64,000 bases of DNA, from positions 306,858 to 370,857 of the forward strand of contig NIVC01000907.1 of NCBI GenBank assembly GCA_002269645.1, read 5' to 3'. The stretch comes from Macrostomum lignano (Eukaryota). The notes beneath the pieces were generated by a model. The model saw only the letters and a list, made by a program, of their open reading frames with translations. It was not told where the DNA came from and searched no databases. The position numbers and the translations under genes were made by a program. Positions 3,759 through 49,029 of the stretch are shown here, one piece after another (the first letter of the stretch is position 1; the number at the start of each line of letters is the position of its first letter).

Positions 3759-4927
3759 AAGCATCGCATTGGACAAAGTTTATCTAAAGATTTTTTGTCT
3801 GTCAATCGCAAGGCTAGCAACATAAATTTTATTGGTTAATATTGTAACAGGTATATTGGTTTTCGCTTTAATTCCTTTATTCCTTGCTTTGTTGAATGCG
3901 AAAATGGTTTCAATTTTATCTCCAGACAGCCGGTTTCTCTATAGTTTCTCTAAGAGGCCAAGAAATTGAGTTACGTTAACTACGATACATATCGGCTATT
4001 TTGACCACCGCTGTGATCGGGCTTAAATTTAAGTGAAGCAAACAGTAGCTAAATTTTTTTATAAATATAACACCAGTCATCATTTTAAATTTACGCCATG
4101 AGTTGCAGCTATTTCTTAATTTAATCGAAAATTTCAAATCTATAAAGCAACATACAGCTCCATAAAGTTAACTTTCGATACATATCGGATAAACTTTATG
4201 TAAGAAGTTGCATTATATTTAAGCTAATTTTAACCAAATGTACGCCTCGTCGGTTGAATTGCTGTCTGTGATAAAAGTGCAATTCTGAAATATTTATTCT
4301 GCGATTTCTACCGCCTTAAGTCTCTCTTTGTTTGTCTGCTTTGTTTTTATATCAAATAAATATGCCAGTTCGTGTCTTCTCAGACGGCTTTCTACTTGTA
4401 TAAAAAATGCTTAAACATAATTATATTTTTTGTCTTCTAATTGCTTTTCGTGTTTTGATTTTAAATTAAAAAACAACAAGCAAATCATTCTACTGTAAGT
4501 AGAAGTTACTTATACTTATAAATTTTACAAAAACTGTTTTTCTATACATATCGGCAACTGACTAAAAAACAAGAATTATGGCTAATACCTCCGATTTTTC
4601 TAGCAAATTAGCAAATAATATTTGTACTAATTTTACAGAAAGCTGTTTGCATCTCAGCTACAATTCACCTGGAAATTGCAGCTGCTTTTAGATTTCAAGA
4701 TTTGGTTTACTACAACTGCCGTTACGTTTACTTATACTCTATAGGACGGACTGTTATAAGCTTAGGAATGAGTAGCCATAAGTGTTCCATTTTCAACACG
4801 TTAGTATCTCAGTTTTAAAGAGCTTACCGTCTTACTCACCGATAAATTTATTTTTAAGTTTGAGTGCTAAGAAAACGTAAGAAATGAGCAAACGTAAAAT
4901 GGAAATACGAACGGTGGCAAAAATGTT

Positions 4928-5000
4928 TGGCCCTACCCAGGTTCGAACTGAGGACCTTCTGCGTGTAAAGCAGACGTGATAACCACTACACCACAGGACC
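4928..5000 (-). tRNA. tRNA-Val(TAC)
   Basis: 73 nt GGTCCTGTGGTGTAGTGGTTATCACGTCTGCTTTACACGCAGAAGGTCCTCAGTTCGAACCTGGGTAGGGCCA folds as a cloverleaf with anticodon TAC; T5 Pol III terminator just downstream (AAAAA at 4919-4923 on +). Confidence 0.93.
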
Positions 5001-5225
5001 ACGAAGGAGCAATTTAGTATACGTGTATTTTATTGGTGTCATGCCACTCTATAAGAGTTTAAATTTTAAGCAATTGAACTAAAGTAAATTTAATTTCAGT
5101 TACGACAGATTGTTTCTTTGGTGTGCGCTTTAATCAGAAATTGTTTAACAGGATCATTGATTACAAGTATGTAAATACGAATTTTACTTTTTTAACTAAT
5201 TCTTTCTCATTTAAGTTTCCCGGGT

Positions 5226-6188
5226 CTAGGAGAGCAGAAAGTCGGCCATGCGGTGAATGTCGATGTTTCCGTCGGCGTCGGCCGGCACGCCGGCCAGCAG
5301 TTCGTCGATCTCTTCCTCCGGCATAGTGGCGCCGAACGACATCAGCGAACGCCTCAGCAGGTCCCGGCTGATGGTGCGCGTGTTCAGGGCCAGCACCTGC
5401 AGGAGCGATTGCGGATGATAATTGTAAAACCGTCTCACAGATTTTTTGCGCAACATGAAATTTAAGCAGCAATAAAGTGCATGGATGAAACTGCAAGAAA
5501 TGCAAGCAGCATTGTAAATTTTGGCCGCATCTGATCAGCTGTTCAAAGTCCATGCAGCCGGCTTGTGGTGAAACTCTAAGCACTTTGTAGTGAGTTGTTC
5601 AGGGCTATGCGGGGGAAAGTGCGCGAGCCACGGTTCCCTACTCACTGCCTACTCACTGCCTACTCACTCCCTACTCACTGCCTACTCACTCCCTACTCAC
5701 TCCCTACTCACTCCCCACTCACTCCCTACTCACCCCTACTCACTCCCTACTCACTCCCTACTCACTCCCTACTCACTCCCTACTAACCTCTACATGTACT
5801 TACTTGCTCCATAATCTCTCCCTACTCTACGCGGCCGCAGGCTCCCCAGCCTCACCTGCAGGCACTGCACCAATCTGCTCCGAGAGTCAAACGGGGCCAA
5901 GCTGTTCACCAAGCCGGCATAGTCCTCGAAGCTGACCTGGTCCGAGTCTTGGATGCCAAAGTCTCGGATGGCATCCAGCAAAGTGCCGATGTTGGGACTG
6001 CAGGCCAGGTAGCGGACGGCTCTGGCCACGCACAGCCCGGGAATGGACAGGTCCCCGGCCAGGTCGTACATAGCAAAGCTCTGCTTCAAATCGGCCAGCT
6101 CATACTCGGACATGCTTTTGAACAGCGGCTCTCTAGAGAAGTTGTTGCCAATGTTGGCTTGCTCAGCATCCGGCTCTGTGCTCGACAT
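5226..6188 (-). CDS. Myosin light chain/calmodulin-like EF-hand protein, exons 5856-6188 and 5226-5396 (167 aa)
   Basis: ELADLKQSFAMYD...QVSFEDY...LVQCLQ|VLALNTRTISRDLLRRSLMSFGATMPEEEIDELLAGVPADADGNID; phase-0 GT-AG intron 5397-5855; degenerate Ca-binding loops typical of light chains. Confidence 0.85.
5635..5785. repeat. 11-bp intronic minisatellite (CTACTCACTCC)
   Basis: Tandem units visible directly. Confidence 0.9.
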
Positions 6189-6914
6189 TGTTTACACACT
6201 GAGCGCTGTCTCTCTTAATTCCAAACGTTATTTGATAGAGTTTCTGTGAAAAAGAAACGCTTACAAAACCCGCAGATCAACTCTTGAAGTTTCGGATTCG
6301 GCCATAGACAGTTCAGAGCTGCGATACTGAATTGTCGGTTCAAAAGAAAACACCGCGAACGCAGCGTATTTACCAACAAGCATGCATCCGCGAGAAAGAG
6401 CTCAAAACGCAGGAATTCTTCCCAACCGAAAGCATTTGTCAGGTGTCCTTAACTAGCTCGTAATTGCATCAGTAGTGATGAAATGCCACCCCATATGTTA
6501 ACTACGCCAACAACAATGTGAAAATTACTCGTATATTGGGTAAAAATTGTCTGCATTTAATTACTTCAAGACAGGTCTAGGAATTAGAATACCTACTAGT
6601 ATGCATTGAAATTGAAGTATACCTACGAGCTACAATAATGGCTTAAGAGTATTGATTGCAAATAAATCAACACTTGATTCAAGAAGGAACAGAACAAAAA
6701 GTTCAGCTGGATGGCTTATGAAATAAACGGAAAACAGTATGAAATTGAGGTTTTCACTACACAACTCTATAAATACAACAGAGTAACATGCAGTGCAAGC
6801 TCTGTAAAAGCTCTGGGGGGCGGCATGCCAAATGCTTTGTACCCCCCACCCCAACTTGTGAGTCGTTGTGGTAATCAATTATTTTTATTCAGGGCCACCA
6901 AAATATAGCGCTTT

Positions 6915-7175
6915 CGGCGCTGAAATGAGTGCCTGCTGCGCTAAAATGAGTGCCTGCTGCGCTAAAATGAGTGACTGCGGCGCTAAAATGAGTGCCTGCT
7001 GCGCTAAAATGAGTGCCTGCTGCGCTAAAATGAGTGACTGCGGCGCTAAAATGAGTGCCTGCTGCGCTAAAATGAGTACCTGCTGCGCTAAAATGAGTGA
7101 CTGCGGCGCTAAAATGAGTGCCTGCTGCGCTAAAATGAGTGCCTGCTGCGCTAAAATGAGTGCCTGCGGCGCTAA
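6915..7175. repeat. 21-bp minisatellite (GCTAAAATGAGTGCCTGCTGC)
   Basis: About 12 tandem units; explains ORFs 6868..7194. Confidence 0.93.
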
Positions 7176-7486
7176 AAGGAATGCCAAAATTTAGTCATGT
7201 ACATGTTGAATTCTTGGCTTTGTCCCCCCCCCACCATAAAATCCATGGCGACGTCCTTGAATGCAAATCATTGATTGTTTCCTATCTCCGCAGTATATTT
7301 TTCCAGGTAATTAGTCTTAAAAGATATTCGCTCGTGGAGTGTAGCGTCTTAATTACTACGTTGCTAGTGGTCCTCGAAAGAAGTGCACAAGTGTGTGCGT
7401 GCTGAGGTATTGGAACGTCCCCTCGTGACTGAATGAAACAGTGCATCAGCCATTCACTGATTGGACAAAGCATTTCTCACTCTAAC

Positions 7487-7771
7487 CTTGAGACAGCTGA
7501 TGAGGCGATCTCTTGGCCGCTCGTACGGCACCATGCCGCACATGAAGCCGACAAATTTGTTGAAATCGATACTGCCCTGCGGCGACAGCCGCGTCTGCTG
7601 CACGTGCTGGAACACCTGCTTCGGGTCCGGACACTCGGCCACCTGCAGTGCCGCGTTGACTAACATGCTAGCCGGGATTCGCAGCGTGCCCGTGTTGTCC
7701 AGCATGGAGAAGGCCTCCTTCATCTCGGCCAGATCCCATTCGGATAGGAAGCTGGGCAGCGGCTCTGACAT
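7487..7771 (-). CDS. Second, paralogous EF-hand N-lobe exon (alternative first exon or orphan)
   Basis: MSEPLPSFLSEWDLAEMKEAFSMLD...GSIDFNKFV...RDRLISCLK|gttaga; donor is phase 0 at the same alignment position as the 5856 exon. Confidence 0.75.
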
Positions 7772-8317
7772 TGTTAGAGTTGTTTCACCAATCAGCTGGT
7801 TTTTCTCGACAACTAGAAGCATCTGAGAAGCTAAAACCGATGAGTTCCCTCTGACTTGAACGGTCTGGTTCAGCACACCAGTTTGAATGGATTCCAATAG
7901 ATCTCATGTCTATGGCAGGTGCTCCATCGATAGTTGGAATATTCTGTTCAAATCTATAAATAGCCTGGTTTCGACTTCAGCTCCTTGGTATATTTAAACA
8001 AAACTGTAGTGAACCTCTCTTCGAAATTGGCTGGCGCCAAATCAGTCATCAAGAAACCAGAGAGTCAGGTGTGATGATAGTTACTCACTTACAGATTTAA
8101 AGAAACGAAGTGCCTTCGAGACTCGGCTTCTGGCTGTTAATCGTTTGAGAAGGTCACGCAAATTTCCTGTGCCTAAAATATCAAAAACGGTACAACTGGA
8201 CTCATACATGGTTTTATGAATCTGTTTTATCATTCTGTTACACATTTCGTTGCTCAGCCATTGAGCCAAGAATGATAAAACAGATTCACCACGCGAATAC
8301 GTAGTATGGTACGTAGG

Positions 8318-8677
8318 GTGGGGGGCCGTAGCCCAGCGGTATAGCGCAGGCTCTGGTGTGCCAGCGACCCAGGCTCGATTCCAAGTGCAGTCACATTAAT
8401 TTGGGGCTGAATTGGAATCTCGGCTTGGCTCTGCTCGTGCAATTAACGGCCTTGACAGCCAACCCCCTAAGGCGCAGTGAAGTGTACATGCCTAACGATA
8501 AAATAAAGTTAGGGCCGCTGTACACTCCTGTGTGAGTGTGTGCCTGCGTACGTATCCGCGCGCTTGTGTGCCTGCTCAGGGGAGTCGGCGCAATGGGCAG
8601 TAATGCCTCTCGCCGGTTGTGTGCCTATGTCGCTTAAAGTGCGCCAGGGTGCCACAACCCACCAGCCTCTAATAAAA
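8318..8677 (+). mobile_element. Full-length tRNA-derived SINE with 12-bp target site duplication
   Basis: A-box 8329-8339, B-box 8372-8382, A-rich 3' end; direct repeat ATGGTACGTAGG at 8306-8317 and 8678-8689; homologous copy at 30455-30620. Confidence 0.8.
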
Positions 8678-8959: not shown

Positions 8960-10915
8960 TCAGTTCTTCAGGCAGCAGCAGTGGCTCCGCGCCGTCCCAT
9001 TCTTTCCTGAAACCCGAGTTCGAACGCTGTGCGCCACGAAGTCGCTCGCCCCGCCTTGCGCCGTTCTCAGGCCAAAGTGCCGCTTAAATCGCCAGATGAC
9101 GGTGGCGTATTGCGCCACGAAGTAGTTAGCCAGCACGGCCTGTCGAAACTGAACGTCTTCCTGCAGCAGCGTGATCTGCTGGGTGAGCAGGGCAATGCCA
9201 AAGTTGAGCAGGAATACCACAATGCACAGGTAGACGAGAGCCTGCGGCCACAGCACCAGGTAGTCGCTGTAGCCGGGAAACTGGCTCAGGCTGAACGTGT
9301 AGCGAAACGTTCGACCGACGTATTCGATAGCGCAGGACCAGGAGTTGTGCTCGCACAGCAGGTAGGGCTGGGTGAGCAGCATTGTGAGCCCAACCAGCAG
9401 CAGCGGTAGCCCAACTAGTAGCAACAGCTTAGTTGAAGAGTTCATGCAGTAAAGCAGGTAGAAAATTGTCTGATTGCAGCAGGACAATTTGCACAGGAAC
9501 ATCACCATTACCAACATCATGAACGAAGTGTTTACAATGAAGAATAGCATCAGCCTTGAAGTATCCACGTACCAGCGACCGTCAACTTGGTAATAGCTGC
9601 TCTTGTCGGAGAAGAAAATCACCTCCAAGCCGACTAGCAGCAGCTGGCATAGCAGAAAGATGCTGACGATGCCCTCCAGTAAGTACTTCTTCATGCTGAG
9701 CGCGCCAGCCAGCAACTGCAGGGGGAACCTGTTGACCTGCAGCGACTTCGGCAGGCTGTTATTGTTAGTCACAATGGCGCCAAACCAAGCACACCAAAAC
9801 AGAACGCTGAGGCTTTGAATGACAAATCGGGCGTAATACACGTAGCGAAAGGCAAGCAGAGTGTCAGGTGGGACAGCGCTCAGGTAGAACAGGCTGTAGT
9901 TAAACTGCACCGGCAGCAGCACCTGCTCAGTGGCATTGAAGGTGTCCCGTGTGAAGATGCGGACCATCAAGGTGGACAGGACGCTGAACAGCAGAAATGT
10001 GAAGAATACGAGCGATATGACAGCCGTGTAGCCGCTTGGCATCAGATTCGAGGAGCTGCGAAAATATGCGGCAGCAACGGGGCTGCTGAAGAAGCAGAAA
10101 AACCCTGGCTGCAGCGTGTCTCCTAGCAGAGGTTGCGCAAACTTGATGAGCTGGATGAATGGCGACTTGTTGTACCGACTGCCGCCCAATGAGTGCGAGT
10201 AGCGGCTGAGGTCGACCTCCTCGACCAGCAGGCTCGGGTCGGTCGGGTGCTCCCGCTCTCTGATCAGGTATCCGGGCGCATTGGCGAACGCTGTCGCCAG
10301 GTGGAAGCAGTCCCTGGCCGCCGCGTACTCCAGCGGTGTCAGGCAGTCGGCCGTCAGCTCCTCGCTCAGCAGCCGAGCGCACGCGTCCGGATGCCGGCGC
10401 GACAGTCTGGCGAAGAGCCGAGCGAGCTGCGCCTCGTCAGTCGGGCTGGCCAGGCTGGAGCAGCAAAAGTCCACCAGGAGGAACAGGGCGCAGCGGGCGC
10501 GGTCCCACAGACCGAGGCTGTCGACCAGCTCGACTGCTCGGCTGGCCAGCTCGTCGTCCCGAGCGAGCAGCACGAGGCAGAACGGCGACAGCTTGGGCTG
10601 CCGATCTGCCTCCGAGCTGTCGTCGGTGACGCCGTCGCAGAATCGGCAGTCGTTGTGCCGCAGCAGCTCCGGACGGTGTTTGAGAGCTTCAGCGAACTTC
10701 GGATATTGTCCGGAGTACAGAAGTACCATGTCTGGATCTTTTGACATCTTTGGTAGGTTTTTGGACTCGTGACCGACTTCCTCGATTGCTTCAACTCTCC
10801 AATACATTTTGATGTCGAGTTGCTTTGGCTTTGGTGCTGTTTTTGGGGCTGAGTTATGCTGCGCAGGCTTTGTCGAATGCTCAAGATACTCATTATTTAA
10901 TTGACGTCCATGCAA
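8960..10915 (-). CDS. Intronless TRPV-like cation channel, paralogue A (open frame; first in-frame ATG 10807)
   Basis: Ankyrin-like LTPLEYAA, VDLS linker, six hydrophobic helices, pore segment FRYTFSL and S6 LLNFGIALL followed by a TRP-helix-like segment; 651-codon uninterrupted frame. Confidence 0.75.
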   Translation of the reverse strand: MHGRQLNNEYLEHSTKPAQHNSAPKTAPKPKQLDIKMYWRVEAIEEVGHESKNLPKMSKDPDMVLLYSGQYPKFAEALKHRPELLRHNDCRFCDGVTDDSSEADRQPKLSPFCLVLLARDDELASRAVELVDSLGLWDRARCALFLLVDFCCSSLASPTDEAQLARLFARLSRRHPDACARLLSEELTADCLTPLEYAAARDCFHLATAFANAPGYLIREREHPTDPSLLVEEVDLSRYSHSLGGSRYNKSPFIQLIKFAQPLLGDTLQPGFFCFFSSPVAAAYFRSSSNLMPSGYTAVISLVFFTFLLFSVLSTLMVRIFTRDTFNATEQVLLPVQFNYSLFYLSAVPPDTLLAFRYVYYARFVIQSLSVLFWCAWFGAIVTNNNSLPKSLQVNRFPLQLLAGALSMKKYLLEGIVSIFLLCQLLLVGLEVIFFSDKSSYYQVDGRWYVDTSRLMLFFIVNTSFMMLVMVMFLCKLSCCNQTIFYLLYCMNSSTKLLLLVGLPLLLVGLTMLLTQPYLLCEHNSWSCAIEYVGRTFRYTFSLSQFPGYSDYLVLWPQALVYLCIVVFLLNFGIALLTQQITLLQEDVQFRQAVLANYFVAQYATVIWRFKRHFGLRTAQGGASDFVAHSVRTRVSGKNGTARSHCCCLKN

Positions 10916-12435
10916 TCAGATTGCCTGCATTGTTATCGACCGGAAGCTCCAACATTAATTATGGCTCATTCCTAGCCAGTCACTAACTCTGGTTGCCATA
11001 GAGATGCAGATCTACTTTATTAGCTGAATTATGCTGTTGTCAACTTTGATGTTGCCATTGACAGGTAAATTGACAGCCGGGCAAATGACTTTTGTTTCCA
11101 TTGTATTGTATATCGTAATCTAATTACTCAAAGGAATAGGACCGATACATTTGTCAGAAGTAATTCTTGTTCAACCGGGTCGGGGTTCGGGGTTCAGGTA
11201 GGGGTACCGGGCTCGGGGTTAACCCGTCCCGAACACCCCTAGCATGGAGTCTTTGGGCGCTGCCGCAAAATCAAAGCGACGGCGGATCTGCAGCCAGCGA
11301 GGAGGCCAGCAGTGTTCAGCACTGAGTCCGCACACTCTGAGAGAGTCGGACGCCTTTACTGCCTGATTCTGGCCCTAAATTCTAATATTTGACATGCACG
11401 GTAAGCACCACTCAACCTCCATCCTAGTTGCACACTCTACCCCTCCGATCGGTTCTGCTTAATTACCAGGTACTTTGCTGTTACCCAAATGCTTGCGTTA
11501 CAATAAACTGACAGCGGCTGTATTTGATGGGTAAACAGACTCAGTCCCATTAATAAGCAAATTACTAAGGAATTTATAATTCACGATTTTATCTGCTTTG
11601 AGCTAATTAATGTAGAAATCAGCAATCCAAATAGTTAAGCTAAGAGCATTGACAGTGCTCAACTGCATCGCATCTGGCTCCATCCCCATGGCAACACAGA
11701 TGAGGCCAGCAGATTAGCTAGTCGGCACTCTACATAATTTCAGCTCACAGCGGGTACAAAACTGAAAGCTGCGAGCGCAGGTGGAAGCCCAGGAACTCCT
11801 CTTACAAAGTCCCGAGCGGCCTGATTGCCGAGAAGAACCCCAGCTGCCATGAAAACGATCAAGAATGTCTGCAGTGCCACATCCTCAGAAGTGAAAGAGG
11901 CCATGGAGATTTTGTACACAAAACAATATAGGAAATTTTTCAACGAACTGCAGCAGCGTCCGGAGCTGCTGCGGCACAGCGACTGCCGATTCTGCGACGG
12001 CGTCACCGACGACAGCTCGGAGGCAGATTGGCAGCCCAAGCTGTCGCCGTTCTGCCTCGTGCTGCTCGCTCGGGACGACGAGCTGGCCAGCCGAGCAGTC
12101 GAGCTGGTCGACAGCCTCGGTCTGTGGGACCGCGCCCGCTGCGCCCTGTTCCTCCTGGTGGACTTTTGCTGCTCCAGCCTGGCCAGCCCGACTGACGAGG
12201 CGCAGCTCGCTCGGCTCTTCGCCAGACTGTCGCGCCGGCATCCGGACGCGTGCGCTCGGCTGCTGAGCGAGGAGCTGACGGCCGACTGCCTGACACCGCT
12301 GGAGTACGCGGCGGCCAGGGACTGCTTCCACCTGGCGACAGCGTTCGCCAATGCGCCCGGATACCTGATCAGAGAGCGGGAGCACCCGACCGACCCGAGC
12401 CTGCTGGTCGAGGAGGTCGACCTCAGCCGCTACTC
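10197..12435. repeat. 479-bp inverted repeat: 10197-10675 vs 11957-12435, spacer 1281 bp
   Basis: Arms give identical translations in all frames apart from two substitutions (N/S and R/W). Confidence 0.93.
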
Positions 12436-13729
12436 CAGCTCTGGTGGAGATCGCTTCCTAAAGTCTCCGTTCATGCAGTATCTGAGATATTCTCAAATTT
12501 ACGTGGCCGAAGAAATTCCTGCAAAGTACATCTGCTTTTTCAACAGCTCGGTGACCCAGGCCTTCTTTAAAAGTATCGGTGACTTTGGTTTTAGCCTCTG
12601 GGAGTCCCTTATCGCACTGTTTTGGTACCTGCTCATGTATGCCATCCTACTGTCCACACTGACTGTGCGGATATTCACAAAGGATACTTTTGACTCTCAG
12701 GTCCAAGTGCTCATCCCGGACAGTGCAAATTCTAACCAATCTTACATTCAGTTATTGTCGCCAAATCTTGTTGCTGCATTCAGGTATGTTTTCTACGTTA
12801 GAATCGGCCTGCAGGTCTTTAGTGTTGCAGGCTGGCTGTGGTGGCTGGTTGCCAGAATATTTGAACTTCTCAGCCAGCCACTGCTGGTACGAAAGCGCCT
12901 GGGTGTGCTGCAATGTCTTAAGAGCGCAGTTTCTTTGAGAGGCGGCGGTGTTTTTGATTCGTTCATGTTTCTTTTCATGCTGACGCAGGCCTTCATCATA
13001 ATGCAGGAGCACAACTTCTTCAGCGATTCAAGAAGCTACTATGAGGTCGATGGGCAGCTGTTTGTCGAGGGGTCCCGGCTTCAGGCGGTGGTCATGCTAA
13101 ATTACGTCTACATGTTTACCCTGCAGCTGTTCTTCATCATGGACATGGCAATGTTTTATCAACTGTTTCTAAACGTTCTGCTCTGCATGAACGCGGCAAT
13201 GAATCTGACATTTCTAGTTGTGCTGCCCTTGGCTCTGATCTGCGCCACGATGCTGCTCAGCCAGCCGTACATCGAGTGCTCCGTCTACTCCTGGACGTGC
13301 GCGGTGGAATATATCGGCCGGTCACTGCGGTACGCGTTCAGTCTGGCCGGATTTCCCAGCATCAGCGATTACGTCACCCTGTGGCCGCAGATCCTCGTGT
13401 TCCTCTTTGTTGGCATTTTCATCCTGAACTTTGGCGTCGCCCTGCTCACCCAGCAGATCAGCCTGCTGCACGAGCACTTCGAGCTTCGTCGAAAAATTTT
13501 AAGCTCATTTTTCGCGCAGCAAACCATTTTTCTAAACAGGCGACTGTCGGATCGACTTCGTCGAAGCAAACAGTCGAGCAATGACAGCCGGGTCACCATG
13601 CGCCGGTCCGTGCCCAGACTTGGTGAAGTGGAATTCGGATCGCCCCATGGCTGCTGCATTGCTGACTATCGACCGATCGCGTTCACAAAATGCCGCGTTG
13701 AAACTGATAAGGCGATGAATGCCGCGTGA
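11849..13729 (+). CDS. Intronless TRPV-like cation channel, paralogue B
   Basis: Same architecture as paralogue A (LTPLEYAA, 6 TM, LRYAFSL pore, ILNFGVALL S6); ATG 11849, TGA 13727-13729. Confidence 0.75.
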   Translation: MKTIKNVCSATSSEVKEAMEILYTKQYRKFFNELQQRPELLRHSDCRFCDGVTDDSSEADWQPKLSPFCLVLLARDDELASRAVELVDSLGLWDRARCALFLLVDFCCSSLASPTDEAQLARLFARLSRRHPDACARLLSEELTADCLTPLEYAAARDCFHLATAFANAPGYLIREREHPTDPSLLVEEVDLSRYSSSGGDRFLKSPFMQYLRYSQIYVAEEIPAKYICFFNSSVTQAFFKSIGDFGFSLWESLIALFWYLLMYAILLSTLTVRIFTKDTFDSQVQVLIPDSANSNQSYIQLLSPNLVAAFRYVFYVRIGLQVFSVAGWLWWLVARIFELLSQPLLVRKRLGVLQCLKSAVSLRGGGVFDSFMFLFMLTQAFIIMQEHNFFSDSRSYYEVDGQLFVEGSRLQAVVMLNYVYMFTLQLFFIMDMAMFYQLFLNVLLCMNAAMNLTFLVVLPLALICATMLLSQPYIECSVYSWTCAVEYIGRSLRYAFSLAGFPSISDYVTLWPQILVFLFVGIFILNFGVALLTQQISLLHEHFELRRKILSSFFAQQTIFLNRRLSDRLRRSKQSSNDSRVTMRRSVPRLGEVEFGSPHGCCIADYRPIAFTKCRVETDKAMNAA

Positions 13730-13914: not shown

Positions 13915-14590
13915 AAGAGGGGAGAGGAGAGGAGAGAAGGGAGAGGAGAGGAGAGAAGGGAGAGGAAAGGAGAGAAGGGAGAGGAAAGGAGAGAAGGGAG
14001 AGGAGAGGAGAAAAGAGAGAGGAGAGGAGAGAAGGGAGAGGAAAGGAGAGAAGGGAGAGGAAAGGAGAGAAGGGAGAGGAGAGGAGAGAAGGGAGAGGAG
14101 AGGAGAGAAGGGAGAGGAGAGGAGAGAAGGGAGAGGAAAGGAGAGAAGGGAGAGGAGAGGAGAGGAGAGAAGGGAGAGGAGAGGAGAGAAGGGAGAGGAG
14201 AGGAGAGAAGGGAGAGGAGAGGAGAGAAGGGAGAGGAGAGGAGAGAAGGGAGAGGAGAGGAGAGAAGGGAGAGGAGAGGAGAGAAGGGAGAGGAGAGGAG
14301 AGAAGGGAGGAGAGGAGAGAAGGGAGAGGAGAGGAGAGAAGGGAGAGGAGAGGAGAGAAGGGAGAGGAAAGGAGAGAAGGGAGAGGAAAGGAGAGAAAGG
14401 AGAGGAGAGGAGAGAGGGGAGAGGAGAGGAGAGAAGGGAGAGGAGAGGAGAGGAGAGGAGACTATAGAGAAGAGAGGAGAGGAGAGGAGAGGAGAGGAGA
14501 GGAGAGGAGAGGAGAGGAGAGGAGAGAAGAGGAGAGGAGAGGAGAGGAGAGGAGAGGAGAGGAGACTATAGAGAAGAGAGCATAGAAGAG
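13915..14590. repeat. Polypurine (GA-rich) low-complexity repeat
   Basis: GGAGA/AGAGG/GAGAAGGGAGA units. Confidence 0.95.
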
Positions 14591-15233: not shown

Positions 15234-18200
15234 TCACCAAGCCGCCTCAGTCTTGAGCGGATCCGCCACGATTCTCTCGTGAATTTCCAGGAACAGCGGC
15301 ACGTAGGTCAAGTAGTCCAGGAAGTCAATGTAGCCTCGCTTCTCTCGATTGAACTTCTTGATCACCTGGTTGAGCGTTTCGGAGATGAAAGCACTGTCAG
15401 TATTTCTATTGGGAACTGTGAGTAACAGGTGACAGACTGAACTGTGAGTGACAGGTGACAGACTGAACTGTGACTGACAGGTGACAGACTGAACTGTGAC
15501 TGACAGGTGACAGACTGAACTGTGAGTGACAGGTGACAGACTGAACTGTTAGTGACAGGTGACAGACTGAACTGTGACTGACAGGTGACAGACTGAACTG
15601 TTAGTGACAGGTGACAGACTGAACTGTGAGTGACAGGTGACAGACTGAACTGTTAGTGACAGGTGACAGACTGAACTGTTAGTGACAGGTGACAGACTGA
15701 ACTGTTAGTGACAGGTGACAGACTGAACTGTGAGTGACAGGTGACAGACTGAACTGTTAGTGACAGGTGACAGACTGAACTGTTAGTGACAGGTGACAGA
15801 CTGAACTGTTAGTGACAGGTGACAGACTGAACTGTTAGTGACAGGTGACAGACTGAACTGTGAGTGACAGGTGACAGACTGAACTGTTAGTGACAGGTGA
15901 CAGACTGAACTGTTAGTGACAGGTGACAGACTGAACTGTTAGTGACAGGTGACAGACTGAACTGTTAGTGACAGGTGACAGACTGAACTGTTAGTGACAG
16001 GTGACAGACTGAACTGTTAGTGACAGGTGACAGACTGAACTGTTAGTGACAGGTGACAGACTGAACTGTGAGTGACAGGTGACAGACTGAACTGTTAGTG
16101 ACAGGTGACAGACTGAACTGTTAGTGACAGGTGACAGACTGAACTGTGAGTGACAGGTGACAGACTGAACTGTGACTAACCGGTGGAACTCGGTCCAACA
16201 CCGACAGTTTGACAGGGTGGCCCGATCTGCTACGCTAGATATGCAGCCAGAAAGTTTCTCACCGATCCAACATTCTCATCCTTGAGATTTCCGGCCAGCA
16301 GCTCGATGGCCAAGCTGTCAACCGTGATCGATCCGGTAGGCGCTTTGTCATCAAGGTCGTCCAGCAGGAAAAACATCTCCTTGCACTTCTCCAGCTTGTA
16401 GTCTAACGCGTCAAAGTTCATTTTGTTCACCATCTTGCGGATTATGGGTCTGAATGGATAGATGGAATAATGGGTGGCTGATATGCGGGCAGGCAGCAAA
16501 GAAAGTAATAATAATTTTTTAATAAACTACATGTAGGTTTTGACCCTTAGCATCTCAGCAACCCCCCCCCCCAAGAGCCTTGACATCTGAGCAACTCCCC
16601 CAAGAGCTTTGATATCTTAGCAACTCCCCCCATGAGCCTTGACATCTCAGCAACTACCCCATGAGCCTTGACGTCTCAGCAACTACCCCATGATCCTTGA
16701 CGTCTCAGCAACTACGCCATGAGCCTTGACGTCTCAGCAACTACCCCATGAGCCTTGACGTCTCAGCAACTACCCCATGAGCCTTGATGTCTCAGCAACG
16801 CCCCCCCCCCCTAAGAGCCTTGACGTCTCAGCAACTACCCCATGAGCCTTGACGTCTCAGCAACGCCACCCCCCCCCCTAAGAGCCTTGACATCTCAGCA
16901 ACTACCCCATGAGCCTTGACGTCTCAGCAACTACCCCATGAGCCTTGACGTCTCAGCAACGCCCCCCTCCTAAGAGCCTTGACATCTCAGCAACTACCCC
17001 ATGAGCCTTGACGTCTCAGCAACTACCCCATGAGCCTTGACGTCTCAGCAACTACCCCATGAGCCTTGACGTCTCAGCCACGCCCCCCCCCTAAGAGCCT
17101 TGACATCTCAGCCACGCCCCCCCCCCTAAGAGCCTTGACATCTCAGCAACTCTCCCACGAGCCTTGATATCTCAGCATATCCCCCATGAGCCTTGCGACC
17201 CATTTGGCGACTTTAGTCTCCTGCAAGCGTAGCTACTTTGCTCCAACCCAAGTCTAGGTAAGATAACACACTGAAATGGAAATGCGTAATATTTGTTCAC
17301 TCACTGCAGCTGGCCATCTTCATAATTCATAGCTCAAAACTCACTCAAGCTGAACGACTTTCTCGCTGAGCGCCGCTATCACGCTGAACAGTCGAAAGTT
17401 GACTCGCGTCCTGGCTGGCAGGTTGAGAATGTGATAGACGTACTGCATCTCCTTCTTGGTGATGAGATGCCCGTTGATGTCCTGGAGGGCCTCCTCCACC
17501 AGGTCGATGTTGAGCTCCAGATCGATAGCCGGGTGCAGCTTCTGGTAGAGAAGCGACTGCTCTCGAAGAAAGTCGGCACCCCCGGCGGCCTGCCTGCGGC
17601 TGGGCTCCAGCTGCTCCTCGACGAAGACCGTGTTGCCGAACAGCGTCAGCCGGCGAATCTCCTCCTTGGTCTCGGCGATTCGGCCAGTCAGCTGCTCGGC
17701 TCGATGCTGGCAATGACGAAGCCGCGAGTCCAGCTGGCGGATCGGCTTGCTGGACTTCAGCTGCGGGTTGGCGGGGTTCGCAAAAGTTTCTTTGACTTTG
17801 ATTTTGGTAAAGCACTACGGGCGAAAGCGAAATTGCAGCTCTTATTATCACTCCTGCGTGCTTTATTCAAGCTGTATAAATTTAGCTGGGAGGCAATTTT
17901 TACGACAGAAGTGCACTGAAAGCTGCAGCCAGAAGGTGCCGATGTACTGATGAACGCGAGAAAGAGCAGGCTGCACTTCTCCTGACAGGCCGACCGGCAC
18001 TTCGGGCAACAACGGAGACCATGTTTCTTCAACTTGCGGACGACAGCCTGGCAGAAGTGAATCCAGTAGACTCGGACTTTGGCATACCCTTGCCGGCCAG
18101 AAAGTGTCAAACTCGATGCACCCTATAGTGAGGAGGCTCCAACTGTCAAACGAGAACCTGCACTGACTTGATGGGAGAGCTGAACAAGCCTTTTGTGTTC

Positions 18201-20144
18201 TATTATTCTAATTTCAAGCTGCAGCATGCAGCTGCGCGCTTGTGCGGGACTCATGTAGCTAGACTGCGCGCTTGTGCCCGGACTCATGTAGCTAGACTGC
18301 GCGCTTGTGCCCGGACTCATGTAGCTAGACTGCGCGCTTGTGCCCGGACTCATGTAGCTAGACTGCGCGCTTGTGCCCGGACTCATGTAGCTAGACTGCG
18401 CGCTTGTGCCCGGACTCATGTAGCTAGACTGCGCGCTTGTGCCCGGACTCATGTAGCTAGACTGCGCGCTTGTGCCCGGACTCATGTAGCTAGACTGCGC
18501 GCTTGTGCCCGGACTCATGTAGCTAGACTGCGCGCTTGTGCCCGGACTCATGTAGCTAGACTGCGCGCTTGTGCCCGGACTCATGTAGCTAGACTGCGCG
18601 CTTGTGCCCGGACTCATGTAGCTAGACTGCGCGCTTGTGCCCGGACTCATGTAGCTAGACTGCGTGCTTGTGCCCGGACTCATGTAGCTAGACTGCGCGC
18701 TTGTGCCCGGACTCATGCGCGCTTAATAATGCGTACCTGGCTCGGTTACTAAAGTTTTTGACCCAGCTCTTCGCGACAATGCACTAAAAACTTACCTCGC
18801 TAAGCTGCTTTGAAGTGAGCATTTGCACCACTGTCTCATCGGGCAGACTGGCCATCAGCCTCTTGATGCGCAGCGCCTCATCGCGGTCGATCTTGACGCC
18901 CGGCTTCCTCTGCTGGCGTCGTTTGTTCAGCTTCGGCTGAGCGTCGACGCTGCTCTGCGGCTTCGACGGCACCGCTTGGTCGTCTGGCAGCGGCAGGCTG
19001 TCCCAGTACCTGTCTCTGGCCATGCCGGCCAGCAGGTGAGTCTGCGTGTCTGTTGGGGGGGGGATAGCAAAATCTCGCAAAAATGTTTGAACCGTTCGAC
19101 CGCAGGATTAGTTCATATCATATTTATGCGAGTTTCTCACCACTGATCTGTCCCATTTCTTCGTTAACCTTGGCCAGACGTTCACTCAGCGAGTCTAAAA
19201 TGAACTTCAACTTTGCCAGCTCGCAGTCAGCCGAGTTGGCACCCTTGAAGTAAAAAAGAAGGTTGATTTGATTTCAATTTTAACAAGATTAATTGATTTC
19301 ACCTGCCCTAATGGCGCATCTGAAGGCTGCGTACGGCTGTTCAGTCCAAGGACTGGGACGCCATACACCCTTAATTACCCCAGCTAATGCTGGCACCCAT
19401 TTTACAGCTGGGTCAACTGAAGTAAGCAGAGTTGAGTGTCTTGCACAAGGACTCAAATTGTTCCGAGTAGACCGAGAATCGAACCCCCGACCTTTCAGTC
19501 GCAAGTCGGACTCTCCAACCACTAGGCTACAACCCCCGCCTTGGTTTCAATGCTGTCAGTGCAAACAGGAATTCGAGCATAGTTCTCACCGGCACAGTTG
19601 GCGGCAGAGAGGCTTCCAGTCTTTGCCTCATGGCTTCGAAGAGCCGGTCGCCGGACGGGATCGTGCCCACCTGCCGCCGCTGCTGCAGCCGGTAAATTTC
19701 TTCAGTAGACAGTCGACTCGCCGACTTTGCTCTGTCGCCGTCGCGATCCTCCGCTATTAGCGAGGAAAGTTCGCGCTCGCCGCCGCCCTCCGCCGCCTCG
19801 CCATCCGGCGCTGCATCGGCGGTCTGCTCAGTAGTCGCTCGGAACATCATCCCGCCGCTGGCACCACCGGCAGCTTCGGCGGCCTCTCGAACAATCTCCC
19901 GGTAGGGGTCGTAGCGGAATCGCTGCTTGACCGCGGCTCGCTTGAAGGCGGACTCGTAGGCTGGGATTCTGTGCGCGTGCACGATGCAGTACTTGGCCAG
20001 GTAGTCCAGGCTGTCCTTGGGCCGGCTGACCGCTGGCTCCTCTGCTGGCTGAGGCGGCGACGCCACGGTCGGTGCCTTCTTCGGCGACGTCTGCATCCTG
20101 GAAATCATTGCGCCAGTGCGCCATTTCGACTTCAATGAGGACAT
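15234..20144 (-). CDS. Uncharacterised EF-hand-domain protein, 6 exons (19671-20144, 19141-19243, 18796-19049, 17345-17814, 16263-16449, 15234-15365), 539 aa
   Basis: All junctions GT-AG with matching phases (0,1,0,2,0); motifs LDYLAKYCIV, INGHLITKKEMQYVYHIL..VNFRLFSVIAALSEK, GSITVDSLAIELLAGNL, GYIDFLDYLTYVPLFLEIH. The 17814 acceptor is the least certain; the gene may extend upstream. Confidence 0.75.
15415..16180. repeat. 24-bp intronic minisatellite (GTGACAGGTGACAGACTGAACTGT-based)
   Basis: About 31 tandem units. Confidence 0.95.
16535..17190. repeat. ~29-bp degenerate intronic minisatellite (GAGCCTTGACGTCTCAGCAACTACCCCAT)
   Basis: Tandem units with poly-C variants. Confidence 0.9.
18228..18720. 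repeat. 33-bp intronic minisatellite (ATGTAGCTAGACTGCGCGCTTGTGCCCGGACTC)
   Basis: About 15 near-perfect units; explains ORFs 18123..18752. Confidence 0.95.
19290..19537 (-). mobile_element. tRNA-headed SINE with CORE-like central domain, copy 1
   Basis: A/B boxes then GAGTCCTTGTGCAAGACACTCAAC...CCCAGCTGTAAAATGGG; homologous to the 21364 copy. Confidence 0.8.
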
Positions 20145-28140: not shown

Positions 28141-29010
28141 TCATTCAGCTGGGATGAAGTGCCACTGGTTCACCTCCGGCGGAATGGGGCAGGGCGGCTG
28201 CACGGCCGGCTGCTTCTCCACCAGCTCGCGCGCCTCCGAGTGATCGATCTTGTACGCGCTGCCGATCACGGAGACGTTGTCGCACGAGATCGAGTTCCGA
28301 TCGACCACGTGACCAACCAGCGACTGCCAGCTGCGGTGCATCTCGTCAATGATGCTCAGCGCAAAGTCGCGGCTCTGGAACTGGCCGTCGAAGGCGAACT
28401 CGTTGCGCGGCTTGCCCTGCGGCACCTTGTAGTTGCGAAACCAGCCGCGCGTCGCGTCCAGGAAGCCGGGCATGTGCGTCTCGATGTCCGACACATCGTT
28501 GAGCTGCTCGGCCAGCGGATCGGAGGTGTCGATGGCCAGCAGCTTCCAGTCGGTTTCGCCCTCGTCGATCATGGCTAAAATTCCCAGCGGCTTCACCTGA
28601 ATGACGGAGCCGCGCGGGTGGACCCGGTGCCCGATCTCGCACACGTCTAGCGGGTCATTGTCTCCCTTGGCCTGTGTCCGCTCGTCCGTGTGGTTCGGGT
28701 CCTCCCAAGTCTGCGGCAGGGCGCCGTAGTTCCAGATGTAGCCGTGGTGGGGGAACACGTTGTCAACATAGCGCAGTTTGCCCTTCTTCACGTCCTGCAC
28801 GATGGGGTTCAGCCTCTGATCCTTGCTGATCTCCATCTTTGCGTTCGTCCAGCGAGGAATCTCAACCACCATGTTGAGCTCGCGCTTCTCTGAGCAGGCG
28901 AACAGCGGGATGTCGTGAAAGGGCGAGATTGGCCCGTTGGGCCCGTAGAAGTACAGCTTGTACTCAGTGGAGTACGGAGCGCCGCGCTCAATAACCCAGT
29001 ACTTGGACAT
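28141..29010 (-). CDS. PPA1: Inorganic pyrophosphatase (family I), intronless, 289 aa; upstream in-frame ATG at 29127
   Basis: ISPFHDIP, VEIPRWTNAKME, WNYGALPQTWEDP, GDNDPLDVCEIG, IDEGETDWK, WFRNYKVP motifs all intact. Confidence 0.96.
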   Translation of the reverse strand: MSKYWVIERGAPYSTEYKLYFYGPNGPISPFHDIPLFACSEKRELNMVVEIPRWTNAKMEISKDQRLNPIVQDVKKGKLRYVDNVFPHHGYIWNYGALPQTWEDPNHTDERTQAKGDNDPLDVCEIGHRVHPRGSVIQVKPLGILAMIDEGETDWKLLAIDTSDPLAEQLNDVSDIETHMPGFLDATRGWFRNYKVPQGKPRNEFAFDGQFQSRDFALSIIDEMHRSWQSLVGHVVDRNSISCDNVSVIGSAYKIDHSEARELVEKQPAVQPPCPIPPEVNQWHFIPAE

Positions 29011-30454: not shown

Positions 30455-30620
30455 GTTAAGGGCACATTGTCACGCAACCGGCGAGCGACAGCGGCCCTAA
30501 CTTTATATTATCGTTAGGCATGTACACTTCACTTTGCCTTGGGGGGTTGGCCCCCAACGGCGTTAATTGCATGAGCAGAGCCAAGCCGAGATTCCAGCTT
30601 AGGACCAAATTAATGCGACT
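30455..30620 (-). mobile_element. 5'-truncated copy of the SINE at 8318
   Basis: Reverse complement matches 8385-8520 (GGAATCTCGGCTTGGCTCTGCTC...GTGTACATGCCTAACGATAA.ATAAAGTTAGGGCCGCTG) and lacks the internal segment ~8521-8610. Confidence 0.8.
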
Positions 30621-30685
30621 GCTCTTGGAATTTTGGAAGTTAAGCTGAAATCGTAATAACGAAACGATTTGACAGGTAATAAACA

Positions 30686-34827: not shown

Positions 34828-37065
34828 ATATTTTCCAGCAGACATTTACCAGCCGACATTTACCTACCGATATTTGCCAGCCGACATTTACCAGCTGACA
34901 TTTACCTGCCGATATTTGCCAGCCGACATTTACCCGCAGACATTTACCAGCCGATATTTGCCAGCCGATATTTTCCAGCCGACATTTACCAGCCGACATT
35001 TACCAGCCGACATTTACCAGTCGACATTTACCTGCCGATATTTGCCAGCCGACATTTACCAGGCCCAAGAGCCCAACGCGGGAATCTCTCTGAATCTCTC
35101 AGGGAATCTCGCGGGATCAGTCGGCAGTTTTTGTCAGCAAAGAACAAGATCCGGTATCGTTTCGCTTTTCTATTCGAATACTTATAAATACGCTCTTACT
35201 AGTCCCTATAATTGGAAATATATATCCCCACTCGCTCCGATTCGGTAGGTGAAACAGATTCGGTAATAGGTGAGACAGATTCGGTAATAGGTGAGACAGA
35301 TTCGGTAATAGGTGAGACAGATTCGGTAAAAGTTAAGACAGATTCGGTATTAGGTGAGACAGATTCGGTATTAGGTGAGACAGATTCGGTATTAGGTGAG
35401 ACAGATTCGGTATTAGGTGAGACAGATTCGGTATTAGGTGAGACAGATTCGGTATTAGGTGAGACAGATTCGGTATTAGGTGAGACAGATTCGGTAATAC
35501 CAGGTAGGTGAGATCTCTTTAGTGTATAATATTTTACGCATTTTTATTGACAGAATCTGTCTGTGGCGACACCTAATTCGGTGCCATCAGCTCCGATAAA
35601 CAGCCATGCCTTCTTCTCTGCCATTGTTTCAATACGCATTACACACTACTGCTCGCAGTACTTCTACTACTAAATTATCAAAGCAATAGTTAAGGTTATT
35701 GATTTGACACAGAAAAAAAGTGCCGCTTATAATGACAAAATTAACGCCAAAGTCATTATGATCCGCGCACTGCAGTATGGCACAGTAGTACCACTTTTTA
35801 GCTGCCGACTGGTCTGCGAGGGAGAACGGGTTGGTAGATTGATGCTAAATCACCTGTCAGACTGATGCTAAATCACCTGTCAGACTGATGCTAAATCACC
35901 TGTCAGACTGATGCTAAATCACCTGTCAGACTGATGCTAAATCACCTGTCAGATTGATGCTAAATCACCTGTCAGATTGATGCTAAATCACCTGTCAGAC
36001 TGATGCTAAATCACCTGTCATATTAATGCTAAATCACCTGTCATATTGATGCTAAATCACCTGTCAGATTGATGCTAAATCACCTGTCAGATTGATGCTA
36101 AATCGCCTGTCACACTGATGCTAAATCACCTGTCAGATTGATGCTAAATCACCTGTCAGACTGATGCTAAATCACCTGTCAGATTGATGCTAAATCACCT
36201 GTCAGATTGATGCTAAATCACCTGTCAGACTGATGCTAAATCACCTGTCAGATTGATGCTAAGTCACCTGTCACACTAATGCTAAATCACCTGTCAGATT
36301 GATGCTAAATCACCTGTCACACTAATGCTAAATCACCTGTCAGATTGATGCTAAATCACCTGTCACACTAATGCTAAATCACCTGTCAGATTGATGCTAA
36401 ATCACCTGTCACACTAATGCTAAATCACCTGTCAGACTGATGCTAAATCACCTGTCAGACTGATGCTAAATCACCTGTCAGATTGATGCTAAATCACCTG
36501 TCAGATTGATGCTAAATCACCTGTCAGACTGATGCTAAATCACCTGTCATATTAATGCTAAATCACCTGTCATATTGATGCTAAATCACCTGTCAGACTG
36601 ATGCTAAATCACCTGTCAGACTGATGCTAAATCACCTGTCAGATTGATGCTAAATCACCTGTCAGATTGATGCTAAATCACCTGTCAGACTGATGCTAAA
36701 TCACCTGTCATATTGATGCTAAGTCACCTGTCACACTAATGCTAAATCACCTGTCAGATTGATGCTAAATCACCTGTCACACTAATGCTAAATCACCTGT
36801 CAGATTGATGCTAAATCACCTGTCACACTAATGCTAAATCACCTGTCAGACTGATGCTAAATCACCTGTCAGACTGATGCTAAATCACCTGTCAGACTGA
36901 TGCTAAATCACCTGTCAGACTGATGCTAAATCACCTGTCAGACTGATGCTAAATCACCTGTCAGATTGATGCTAAATCACCTGTCAGACTGATGCTAAAT
37001 CACCTGTCAGACTGATGCTAAATCACCTGTCAGACTGATGCTAAATCACTTGTCAGACTGATGCT
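34828..37065. repeat. Three minisatellites: degenerate ~20-bp 34828-35060, 21-bp 35236-35505, 21-bp (GATGCTAAATCACCTGTCAGA) 35843-37065
   Basis: Tandem units visible directly; no spacers. Confidence 0.93.
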
Positions 37066-40600: not shown

Positions 40601-42161
40601 GGCTAAAACCCAGGCGTGCCTCTTCTCTAGGAACCGGGCCGACTTTGATCGGCCACCTGATCTCCATCTTGCCGGCACTCAACTTCGCTTCACTGAGTCT
40701 CTCAAATACCTCGGTATTTGGATCGACCGCGGACTCATCTTTGCTCAACAAGTTAAAACGGTCAAATAAAAGATGGCCAAACGCACCAACATCGTGAGAG
40801 CGCTAGCACAAAGGAGCTGGGGCTGGGACCGTAAGCTGCTGATGCGTACGTACACCGCCATGGTCGAATCTGTCATATGGCACGCGGCAGCGGCCTGGCT
40901 ACCTTGGCTATCCAAAAGCCGGTTGAACGAACTCGAACGGGCTCAAAGGGCAGCGCTCAGAACCGTGGCCGGCCTCCCTAAATCCACTCCGGAGGAGGCC
41001 GTTTACCTCGAACTCGGAACCGTTCCCATTTCCGTTGAAGGACACAGAAGAGCCCTGCTGGCTGTCAAGAAGGCCCTCAGGCGGCCTGCCTACGACCCTT
41101 GGCGCAGCCTCTGCGAAGACCAAGGCCGGCGCAGGCTCAAAGCTAACAAAGGCCTCCGGGATCAAGCCAAGCTGGAATCCGAGCAGATTCTGCATTGCCC
41201 ACGCCGGGAATCGAACTGGATCAGGAACGAGCCCTGGCTTCCGAGAATTGAGGATCGGGTCACCCTTTGCGAACACCTGACTCAGCCGATCTCCAGGAAC
41301 GATCCGCCAGAGACCAGGCGGTCGGCGACGGAAGACACCATTCAATCATGGGGCGACCGCAAGATCCACTACTTCACCGACGGGTCTGCATCAGAAGGAA
41401 CTGAGAATGGAGGGGCAGCCTGTGTGGCGGTCGCCCCTACCTCGGGCCAGGTGGTTTGGATTGAGTGAGCTGCTACCGGGCGCTGGTGTAGCTCGTTCCA
41501 AGCTGAACTCTCAGCTCTGCACCTCGCCCTGGATCACATCCTTGAGACTAAACAGGACTCTGCTCTGATCCTCACCGACAGCCGATCGGCCATTGCGGCG
41601 CTCAAGGGTCGGCAACACTCCCTGAACCCTCTGCTCGAGTCGCTCAAGCGCAAGCTGACACAGGTGGAGAGCCACGCCGACGTGGTCCTGCAGTGGATCC
41701 CAGGTCACTCTGGGACTCCCGGTAACGAGAGAGCCGACGTCGAGGCCAAGAACGCCTGTCTGCTCCCCCAGGACATTCTAGGGATCGACATCGAGGCCGC
41801 CCGCAGCCGTATACGCCGTCTCATCAACTACAGGCCTCTCCTGAATGACCGGCTGAAGCGGGTCTACAGCAAGACCCCCTCGATGCCCGTTCGCCCCCGC
41901 GCGCTTCAGGTTTCCATAGCTCAAATGCGTGCCGGTCACGATCCTTCCACGGCGTACTATCAGCACCGAATAGGCTCTAGGGAGGATAGCAGATGCCTCC
42001 GGTGCGACCTCTTTGAAGACAAGGACCACTTCCTCGAATGTCCGGCCCTGGCAGGAGCTCGGCACGCGACGGACCTACACCAACTGGAGGACTTGGCCGA
42101 TGGCGATCTGGTGGCTAGGTTCTTGGACTGCCTGCATAGGCAGCCCTAGACCACCTTCCGC

Positions 42162-45245: not shown

Positions 45246-49029
<3,784 letters not shown>

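Follow-up and report, generated by a model that had tools for sequence, protein, structure and literature searches.

The window analysed here is the last 64 kb of the Macrostomum lignano contig NIVC01000907.1 (window position x is contig position x + 306857); compared over 20.9 kb (window 18141–39010), the two sequences are 100% identical. Two uninterrupted, clearly paralogous open reading frames (ORFs) lie head to head in it, paralogue A (8960–10915, minus strand) and paralogue B (11825–13729, plus strand). They are almost identical over a sharply bounded tract of 479 nt and have the divergence of old paralogues on either side of it. Very probably, the A/B tract arose by interlocus gene conversion, as one part of a recurrent, GC-biased concerted evolution of a single domain in an orphan family of three genes. 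The third gene, paralogue C, is at another locus.

Extent and edges of the tract

An inverted-repeat search returned two arms of 534 nt (10197–10730 and 11902–12435) that are 95% identical. Base-by-base comparison confined the near-perfect part to exactly 10197–10675 on the minus strand in A and 11957–12435 on the plus strand in B, where 477 of the 479 positions are the same. There are only two mismatches, A 10653 / B 11979 and A 10603 / B 12029, and both are nonsynonymous (Asn/Ser and Arg/Trp), so there is no synonymous difference over ca. 123 synonymous sites. The tract opens on a codon boundary in both ORFs and covers 159 codons (ORF codons 81–239 in A). Both arms are 69% GC, with a GC content at third codon positions (GC3) of 0.88.

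The flanking sequences of A and B are ca. 51% identical at the nucleotide level and 40% identical at third positions. At the flank identity, the chance of two or fewer mismatches in 479 nt is ca. 1e-135, and with a flank divergence of 20% it is still ca. 1e-42. The edges of the tract are sharp to within one codon – past both of them, identity drops immediately to the level of old paralogues. Whichever two of the genes A, B and C are compared, the 3' edge falls on the same codon, and directly after it comes a stretch that contains insertions and deletions (HSLGGS / SS-GGD / SD--GD). The part of the tract that A and B have in common with C, here called the core, has a 5' edge adjoining a one-codon insertion or deletion in C, while the A/B tract reaches 78 nt further.

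Divergence inside and outside the tract

Divergence at synonymous (dS) and nonsynonymous (dN) sites was calculated by the Nei–Gojobori method on a codon alignment of A, B and C. Downstream of the tract, dS was 2.2 between A and B, 2.6 between A and C, and 2.3 between B and C, with dN of 0.62, 0.60 and 0.39, respectively. Upstream of the tract, all pairs had a dS of 1.7 or more and a dN of 0.72–0.79. Within the 479 nt of the A/B tract, dS was 0 (no differences at the ca. 123 sites) and dN was 0.006 (two differences). The earlier note on this DNA had suggested comparing dS along the paralogues; run by region, this comparison shows dS collapsing to 0 in the tract against saturated flanks.

The relationships among the three genes also differ between the tract and its surroundings. 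Downstream of the tract, protein identity is 37.7% between A and B, 37.9% between A and C, and 52.4% between B and C, whereas in the core it is 100% between A and B and 91.7% between either of these and C. The topology therefore switches from ((B,C),A) outside the tract to ((A,B),C) inside it, which is a classical signature of non-allelic conversion. The pair most recently homogenized is the physically adjacent A and B, not the closest relatives, B and C.

Gene conversion is strongly supported by these sequence comparisons, through both the collapse of dS and the incongruent trees. The earlier note had proposed a recent gene conversion between inverted paralogues, and with dS at 0 inside the tract and above 2 outside, and with trees that disagree, this is by far the best explanation. 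Its description of the locus was likewise borne out: the arms differ at two positions in 479 bp even when synonymous sites are counted, the tract is in frame from a codon-boundary start in both ORFs and has edges sharp to within a codon, the 1.28-kb spacer measures 1281 nt, and the head-to-head paralogues are diverged elsewhere (ca. 38% protein identity between A and B, dS above 2).

Involvement of a third gene

The only close relative of A and B in the databases is C (P0001, M. lignano BOX15_Mlig004730g1, 639 aa). This gene is found on three contigs, unlinked to A and B, where CUB and ADAM genes flank it and no partner gene is present. The three copies of C differ at 0–1 positions and probably match the three subgenomes described for the M. 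lignano assembly (PMC10733133).

The core common to A and C spans 10197–10597 on the minus strand in A and 10241–10641 of the C locus (L001), with 12035–12435 as its equivalent in B. Over its 401 nt, nucleotide identity to C is 95.3% by blastn, and the remainder of the C gene is ca. 70% identical. Against C, the core has a dS of 0.071 and a dN of 0.042, compared with a dS above 2 in the flanks. A and B differ from C at 19 positions in the core, 12 nonsynonymous and 7 synonymous. With the resulting dN/dS of ca. 0.6, the likeness of the tract is not to be ascribed to extreme purifying selection on the protein. A two-gene event, as originally proposed, is an incomplete account: the exchange between A and B stands, but at least three genes at two loci are involved.

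A more distant relative, P0002, is 53% identical to A, B and C in the N-terminal domain and ca. 36% identical in the membrane part. The 53% in the domain that contains the tract shows how far sequences diverge without conversion.

Structure of the locus and of paralogues A and B

Both genes are intronless. In A, the ORF is open from 10915 and has its first ATG at 10807, giving a protein of 615 aa from that ATG (8960–10807, minus strand); in B, it is open from 11825 with its first ATG at 11849, giving 626 aa (11849–13729, plus strand). These two starts were taken from the sequence as the likely ATGs. C is also a single-exon gene, and the genome average in M. lignano is about five introns per gene (PMC5730564). 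Neither A nor B is called a gene in the NCBI annotation of GCA_002269645.1, which lists none between window positions 7826 and 17825. C is annotated there, unlike A and B, which are intact and ca. 620 aa each.

The spacer between the arms (10676–11956, 1281 nt) consists of the diverged 5' coding ends of A (10676–10807) and B (11849–11956) and an intergenic region of 1041 nt from ATG to ATG, in which both promoters presumably lie. A blastn search of the spacer against the window and the retrieved loci returned only the self-match.

Predicted proteins

Pfam had no family for the full proteins at E ≤ 1, and when the domains were searched separately nothing relevant came up even at E ≤ 10. A PDB profile search had no hits at E ≤ 10, a word-indexed search gave no family assignment, and a HMMER profile search against 1.84 billion representatives recovered only P0001 and P0002. 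By sequence, A and B thus belong to an orphan family whose two other members are these proteins.

Hydropathy and the secondary structure of AlphaFold2 (AF2) models give A an N-terminal cytosolic domain followed by six hydrophobic segments, and B is alike. By hydropathy, A, B and C all conserve the six segments, the last of which is preceded by a loop of ca. 45 aa. The AF2 models were built from an alignment of four sequences and are of low confidence (predicted local distance difference test, pLDDT, 44.8 and 50.4). In them, helices at the N-terminus and a beta-hairpin are followed by six long helices, with a further short one in the last loop, and by a long helix at the C-terminus. Of these parts, the tract accounts for the helical cytosolic domain and the beta-hairpin, and it ends ca. 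55 residues ahead of the first membrane helix.

In a Foldseek search with the full-length model (pLDDT ca. 45), the top 50 PDB hits were all TRP channels, the best being TRPV1 (E 5e-3, probability 0.84, TM-score 0.15). With the membrane-part model, also of low confidence, the matches had E values of 0.4 or worse and were a mix of TRP, Kv, KCNQ and HCN channels. These matches to TRP channels are a weak if consistent hint and are not significant. The sixth helix carries the motif LNFG(I/V)ALL, which we take to resemble the LLNMLIAL of TRP channels – a lead, not a test. A conserved TRP box was not found by eye: A has IWRFKR ca. 30 residues after the sixth helix, and this motif is not conserved in B or C. 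The 225-aa N-terminal domain had no hit to Pfam Ank even at E ≤ 10, and its only resemblance is a secondary structure like that of helical repeats. Motifs seen by eye in this domain, such as TPLEYAAARD, serve only as a lead on ankyrin.

The models make "six-transmembrane, TRP-like cation channel" a reasonable working label, while the labels "TRPV" and "ankyrin" are not established. The earlier note had used them as "TRPV-like" and "ankyrin-like". The TRPV-like assignment is in keeping with the six hydrophobic segments, the pore loop and the Foldseek list of 50 TRP channels, but the model is poor and no Pfam, PDB or remote-homology match accompanies it. Placing the tract in an ankyrin-like/linker region was right as to position – it spans the helical N-terminal domain in the cytosol and the beta-hairpin that precedes the membrane – but the ankyrin part of the claim found no Pfam Ank match.

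GC content and direction of conversion

The GC content of the tract is 66–69%, and its GC3 is 0.88 in A, 0.88 in B and 0.83 in C. The flanks of the three genes have 44–61% GC and a GC3 of 0.44–0.74 (44% and 54% GC in the two flanks of A; 44% and 50% in those of B). The GC3 pattern over three genes fits long-term, repeated GC-biased conversion.

The suggestion that A was the donor, made earlier from the GC content of the tract relative to B, does not survive. The tract exceeds the flanks of A as much as those of B, so that GC content is uninformative about the donor, and C is elevated as well. At both of the A/B mismatches (10603 and 10653), the base in B is the base in C; these sites may be the residue of patchy mismatch repair or two later changes in A. 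The mismatch pattern fits either history and, like the GC content, does not single out one of the two genes as the donor.

A model of recurrent conversion

We infer a mechanism of the following kind. A and B are paralogues of long standing, transcribed divergently, in a Macrostomum-restricted family of putative six-transmembrane, TRP-like channels. Homologous-recombination repair that used the paralogue as template would have overwritten 479 bp of the N-terminal cytosolic domain of one of the two genes. The exchange between A and B was very probably recent in the extreme, and the same segment was very probably exchanged earlier with C at the other locus, which makes the process a recurrent concerted evolution limited to one domain and not a single event. 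Repeated GC-biased mismatch repair may have brought the tract to about 70% GC. Extension of the heteroduplex would halt where homology collapses, as it does at the codon insertions and deletions and saturated sequence at both 3' edges and at the 5' edge of the core with C. If extension stops at heterology in this way, the tract would stay sharp-edged and the island of identity would be self-maintaining.

Several points weigh against this reading. The 3' edge common to three genes could reflect functional constraint instead of a passive boundary of homology. Part of the GC excess is at codon positions 1 and 2 and comes from the Ala/Arg/Leu/Pro-rich composition of the domain, which is seen in P0002 too. 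The identity of the arms rests on one assembled copy of the A/B locus: exact look-ups with B (two starts), the EF-hand-like neighbours of A and the annotated protein P0003 returned either nothing or only NIVC01000907.1, and no second copy of the locus. The Mlig_3_7 assembly was made with Canu 1.4 and polished by Pilon with Illumina and RNA sequencing reads (PMC5730564), and in the M. lignano genome 93% of short-read pairs have more than one mapping position (PMC10733133). With that much multiple mapping, Pilon could have removed a small number of genuine arm-to-arm differences, and the real identity of the arms may be somewhat below 99.6%.

Alternative explanations

Selection may be what maintains the homogenization, although we think this on balance unlikely. 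Conversion would supply the variation, and A, B and possibly C would keep identical cytosolic modules for a common partner, ligand or assembly interface (e.g. in a heterotetramer) while their pores diverge. In the models, the tract matches a single structural unit made up of the N-terminal helices and the beta-hairpin just before the membrane domain, and the segment and its 3' edge recur in three genes. This domain is also the part of the family best conserved between species (53% against ca. 36% in the comparison with P0002), and there are precedents in the paired receptors Siglec-11/16 (PMC5701461) and CEACAM (PMC2832619). The dN/dS of the core against C, at ca. 0.6, does not indicate tight constraint, however; neither A nor B has an NCBI gene call that could bring transcript support for co-expression, and an island of homology that maintains itself accounts for the recurring edges with no need of selection.

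Inversion is a less probable source of the identity. A crossover between the arms would invert the 1.28-kb spacer and exchange promoters and 5' ends between the two gene bodies, with homogenization as a by-product. The geometry permits this: each arm is in frame with its gene, and both 5' ends and the intergenic region lie within the spacer. A past swap also predicts that the N-terminal codons upstream of the tract should have no extra affinity between B and C, unlike the sequence downstream, and the 18 codons there have none (hand-counted matches to C: 31/54 for A, 29/54 for B), though a comparison of 54 nt is not significant. Only one orientation of the spacer is assembled, and conversion without crossover suffices for everything seen. 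C is unlinked and cannot join in an inversion, yet it shares the tract.

About as improbable, in our view, is that the inverted identity is kept because it is used. The locus has the layout of an invertible switch, with inverted arms of 479 bp on either side of a 1281-bp segment containing the two 5' ends and the intergenic region. Recombination between the arms would flip a cassette of promoter and N-terminus, somatically or between individuals, and so swap the control of the two channel bodies; or an identical module would be selected for mixed channels of A, B and C with different pores. Among the ten largest of the window's remaining ORFs, the part that was scanned with Pfam, no dedicated recombinase turned up, only long interspersed nuclear element (LINE) endonuclease/reverse transcriptase, zinc fingers and a pyrophosphatase. 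If either of these use-based readings is true, the tract is a functional design in an orphan, flatworm-specific, TRP-like family and not a neutral by-product of recombination.

It is very improbable that read correction in Canu, or polishing in Pilon with short reads and RNA sequencing reads, made merely similar arms identical. The software and read types used, the three subgenomes and the multiple mapping of 93% of read pairs all leave room for such an artefact. However, polishing needs reads that already map, and could remove a few single nucleotide polymorphisms but not raise identity from ca. 50% to 99.6% with edges sharp to the codon, and single PacBio reads are long enough to contain both arms and the spacer. 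RNA sequencing reads of the annotated C would have made A and B more like C, yet the two match each other and are unlike C at each of the 19 differing core sites. The copies of C, which were assembled independently, carry the same tract and edge. What is left is a small residual doubt on the reality of the arm identity.

Constraint on the nucleotide sequence itself, with an embedded antisense ORF, a regulatory RNA or DNA element, or a small-RNA target freezing three genes without any exchange, can be set aside almost entirely: it has in its favour the boundary common to three genes and the long ORFs in other frames across the tract (10193–10744, plus strand; 11740–12351, minus strand), but such ORFs are expected at 70% GC, Rfam has nothing in the tract, the P0002 protein is only 53% identical over the domain, the A/B tract outreaches the core by 78 nt, and constraint cannot account for identity between the adjacent A and B when B and C, though more closely related, differ by 5%.

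Two other candidates were considered and rejected. A mobile element or repeat as carrier of the tract is countered by the lack of any further match to the tract or the spacer in the window or the retrieved loci, and by the ancestral nature of the domain, through which P0002 aligns. An embedded RNA element is countered by the Rfam search, in which the only match in the window is a tRNA, located elsewhere.

Surrounding sequence

That match is a tRNA-Val (anticodon TAC) at 4927–5001 on the minus strand. Just past the 3' end of A, at 5226–7897 on the minus strand, are two tandem ORFs with weak matches to EF-hand pairs (5790–6188 and 7454–7897) with a mutual identity of 29%. An annotated partial gene, BOX15_Mlig021104g1 (P0003, 169 aa), spans 5226–7825. 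An EF-hand neighbour beside C, looked for as a sign of functional linkage, was not found. A dispersed repeat, 85–93% identical between its copies, is present at 8321–8676, ca. 280 nt past the stop codon of A, at 30488–30631, and at 1217–1580 of the C locus.

On the other side, a minisatellite of 34 copies of a 19-nt unit (13916–14565), purine-only on the plus strand, begins 190 nt past the stop codon of B. More than 20 further minisatellite arrays are found in the window, among them those at 1–788, 15413–16173, 18232–18717, 35836–37065 and 54381–56121. LINE-like retrotransposon ORFs with endonuclease and reverse transcriptase are at 37705–41468 (plus strand), and a LINE-like ORF with a reverse-transcriptase fragment and C2H2 zinc fingers is at 46202–47953 (plus strand).

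An inorganic pyrophosphatase of 289 aa is encoded at 28141–29010 on the minus strand. An identical protein is encoded in the opposite orientation, near the end of the record, on NIVC01000908.1 (L005), and the duplicate represents a homeologous copy or else a scaffold joint at which the sequence was falsely duplicated; the C gene, too, occupies adjacent records (1640 and 1641). This sister record stops 3.9 kb beyond the pyrophosphatase gene, short of the A/B locus.

Significance and comparison with known systems

The mechanism is a textbook one and events of this kind are well known (PMC3924837, PMC3924832, PMC8600007). The A/B locus is a clean example of concerted evolution confined to a domain – an island of zero dS in saturated paralogues, with a switch of topology, an unlinked third participant and a GC3 signature – and its host is a neopolyploid flatworm in which such exchange has not been described. 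The analysis also flags two intact genes of ca. 620 aa as absent from the M. lignano reference annotation, and defines a small orphan family of putative six-transmembrane channels. Trees and dS values for the A/B/C family, and short-read mapping across the tract, will mislead.

As modelled, the family resembles TRP channels (TRPV, TRPA, TRPC and TRPM) in overall architecture: a helical cytosolic domain at the N-terminus and a beta-hairpin lead into six membrane helices, a pore helix lies between the fifth and sixth of these, and a long helix follows the last. On the other hand, sequence searches detected no homology to TRP profiles or structures and no Pfam ankyrin repeats, and a conserved TRP box was not seen by eye.

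Interlocus conversion limited to one domain is known from paired receptors, including Siglec-11/16, Siglec-5/14 and the activating and inhibitory pairs of CEACAM (PMC5701461, PMC4042635, PMC2832619). As in those systems, A and B are neighbouring paralogues in which one domain is near-identical through repeated conversion, the rest is diverged, and the edges are sharp. In the paired receptors, however, the homogenized domain is extracellular and binds ligand, whereas in A and B it is an N-terminal module, on the cytosolic side, of a putative channel. The exchange also takes in an unlinked third gene, and no sign of selection or of host-pathogen pressure was found for A and B.

Conversion from arm to arm is known in human Y palindromes (PMC8600007), and ectopic conversion occurs between Drosophila duplicates (PMC3924832). 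A and B are like such inverted repeats and palindromes in their inverted orientation, short spacer, intrachromosomal conversion, GC-biased outcome and potential for inversion of the spacer. Long palindromes are kept alike over their whole length, whereas the arms of A and B are only 479 bp within otherwise saturated genes, and the duplication is ancient (dS above 2). Among channels, conversion has been described between paralogues of the voltage-gated sodium channel in Taricha newts, where the tracts carry adaptive substitutions in the pore (PMC8476164). There, as in A and B, short tracts move sequence between paralogous genes for cation channels, but in A and B the pore region is untouched and it is the cytosolic domain that has been homogenized.

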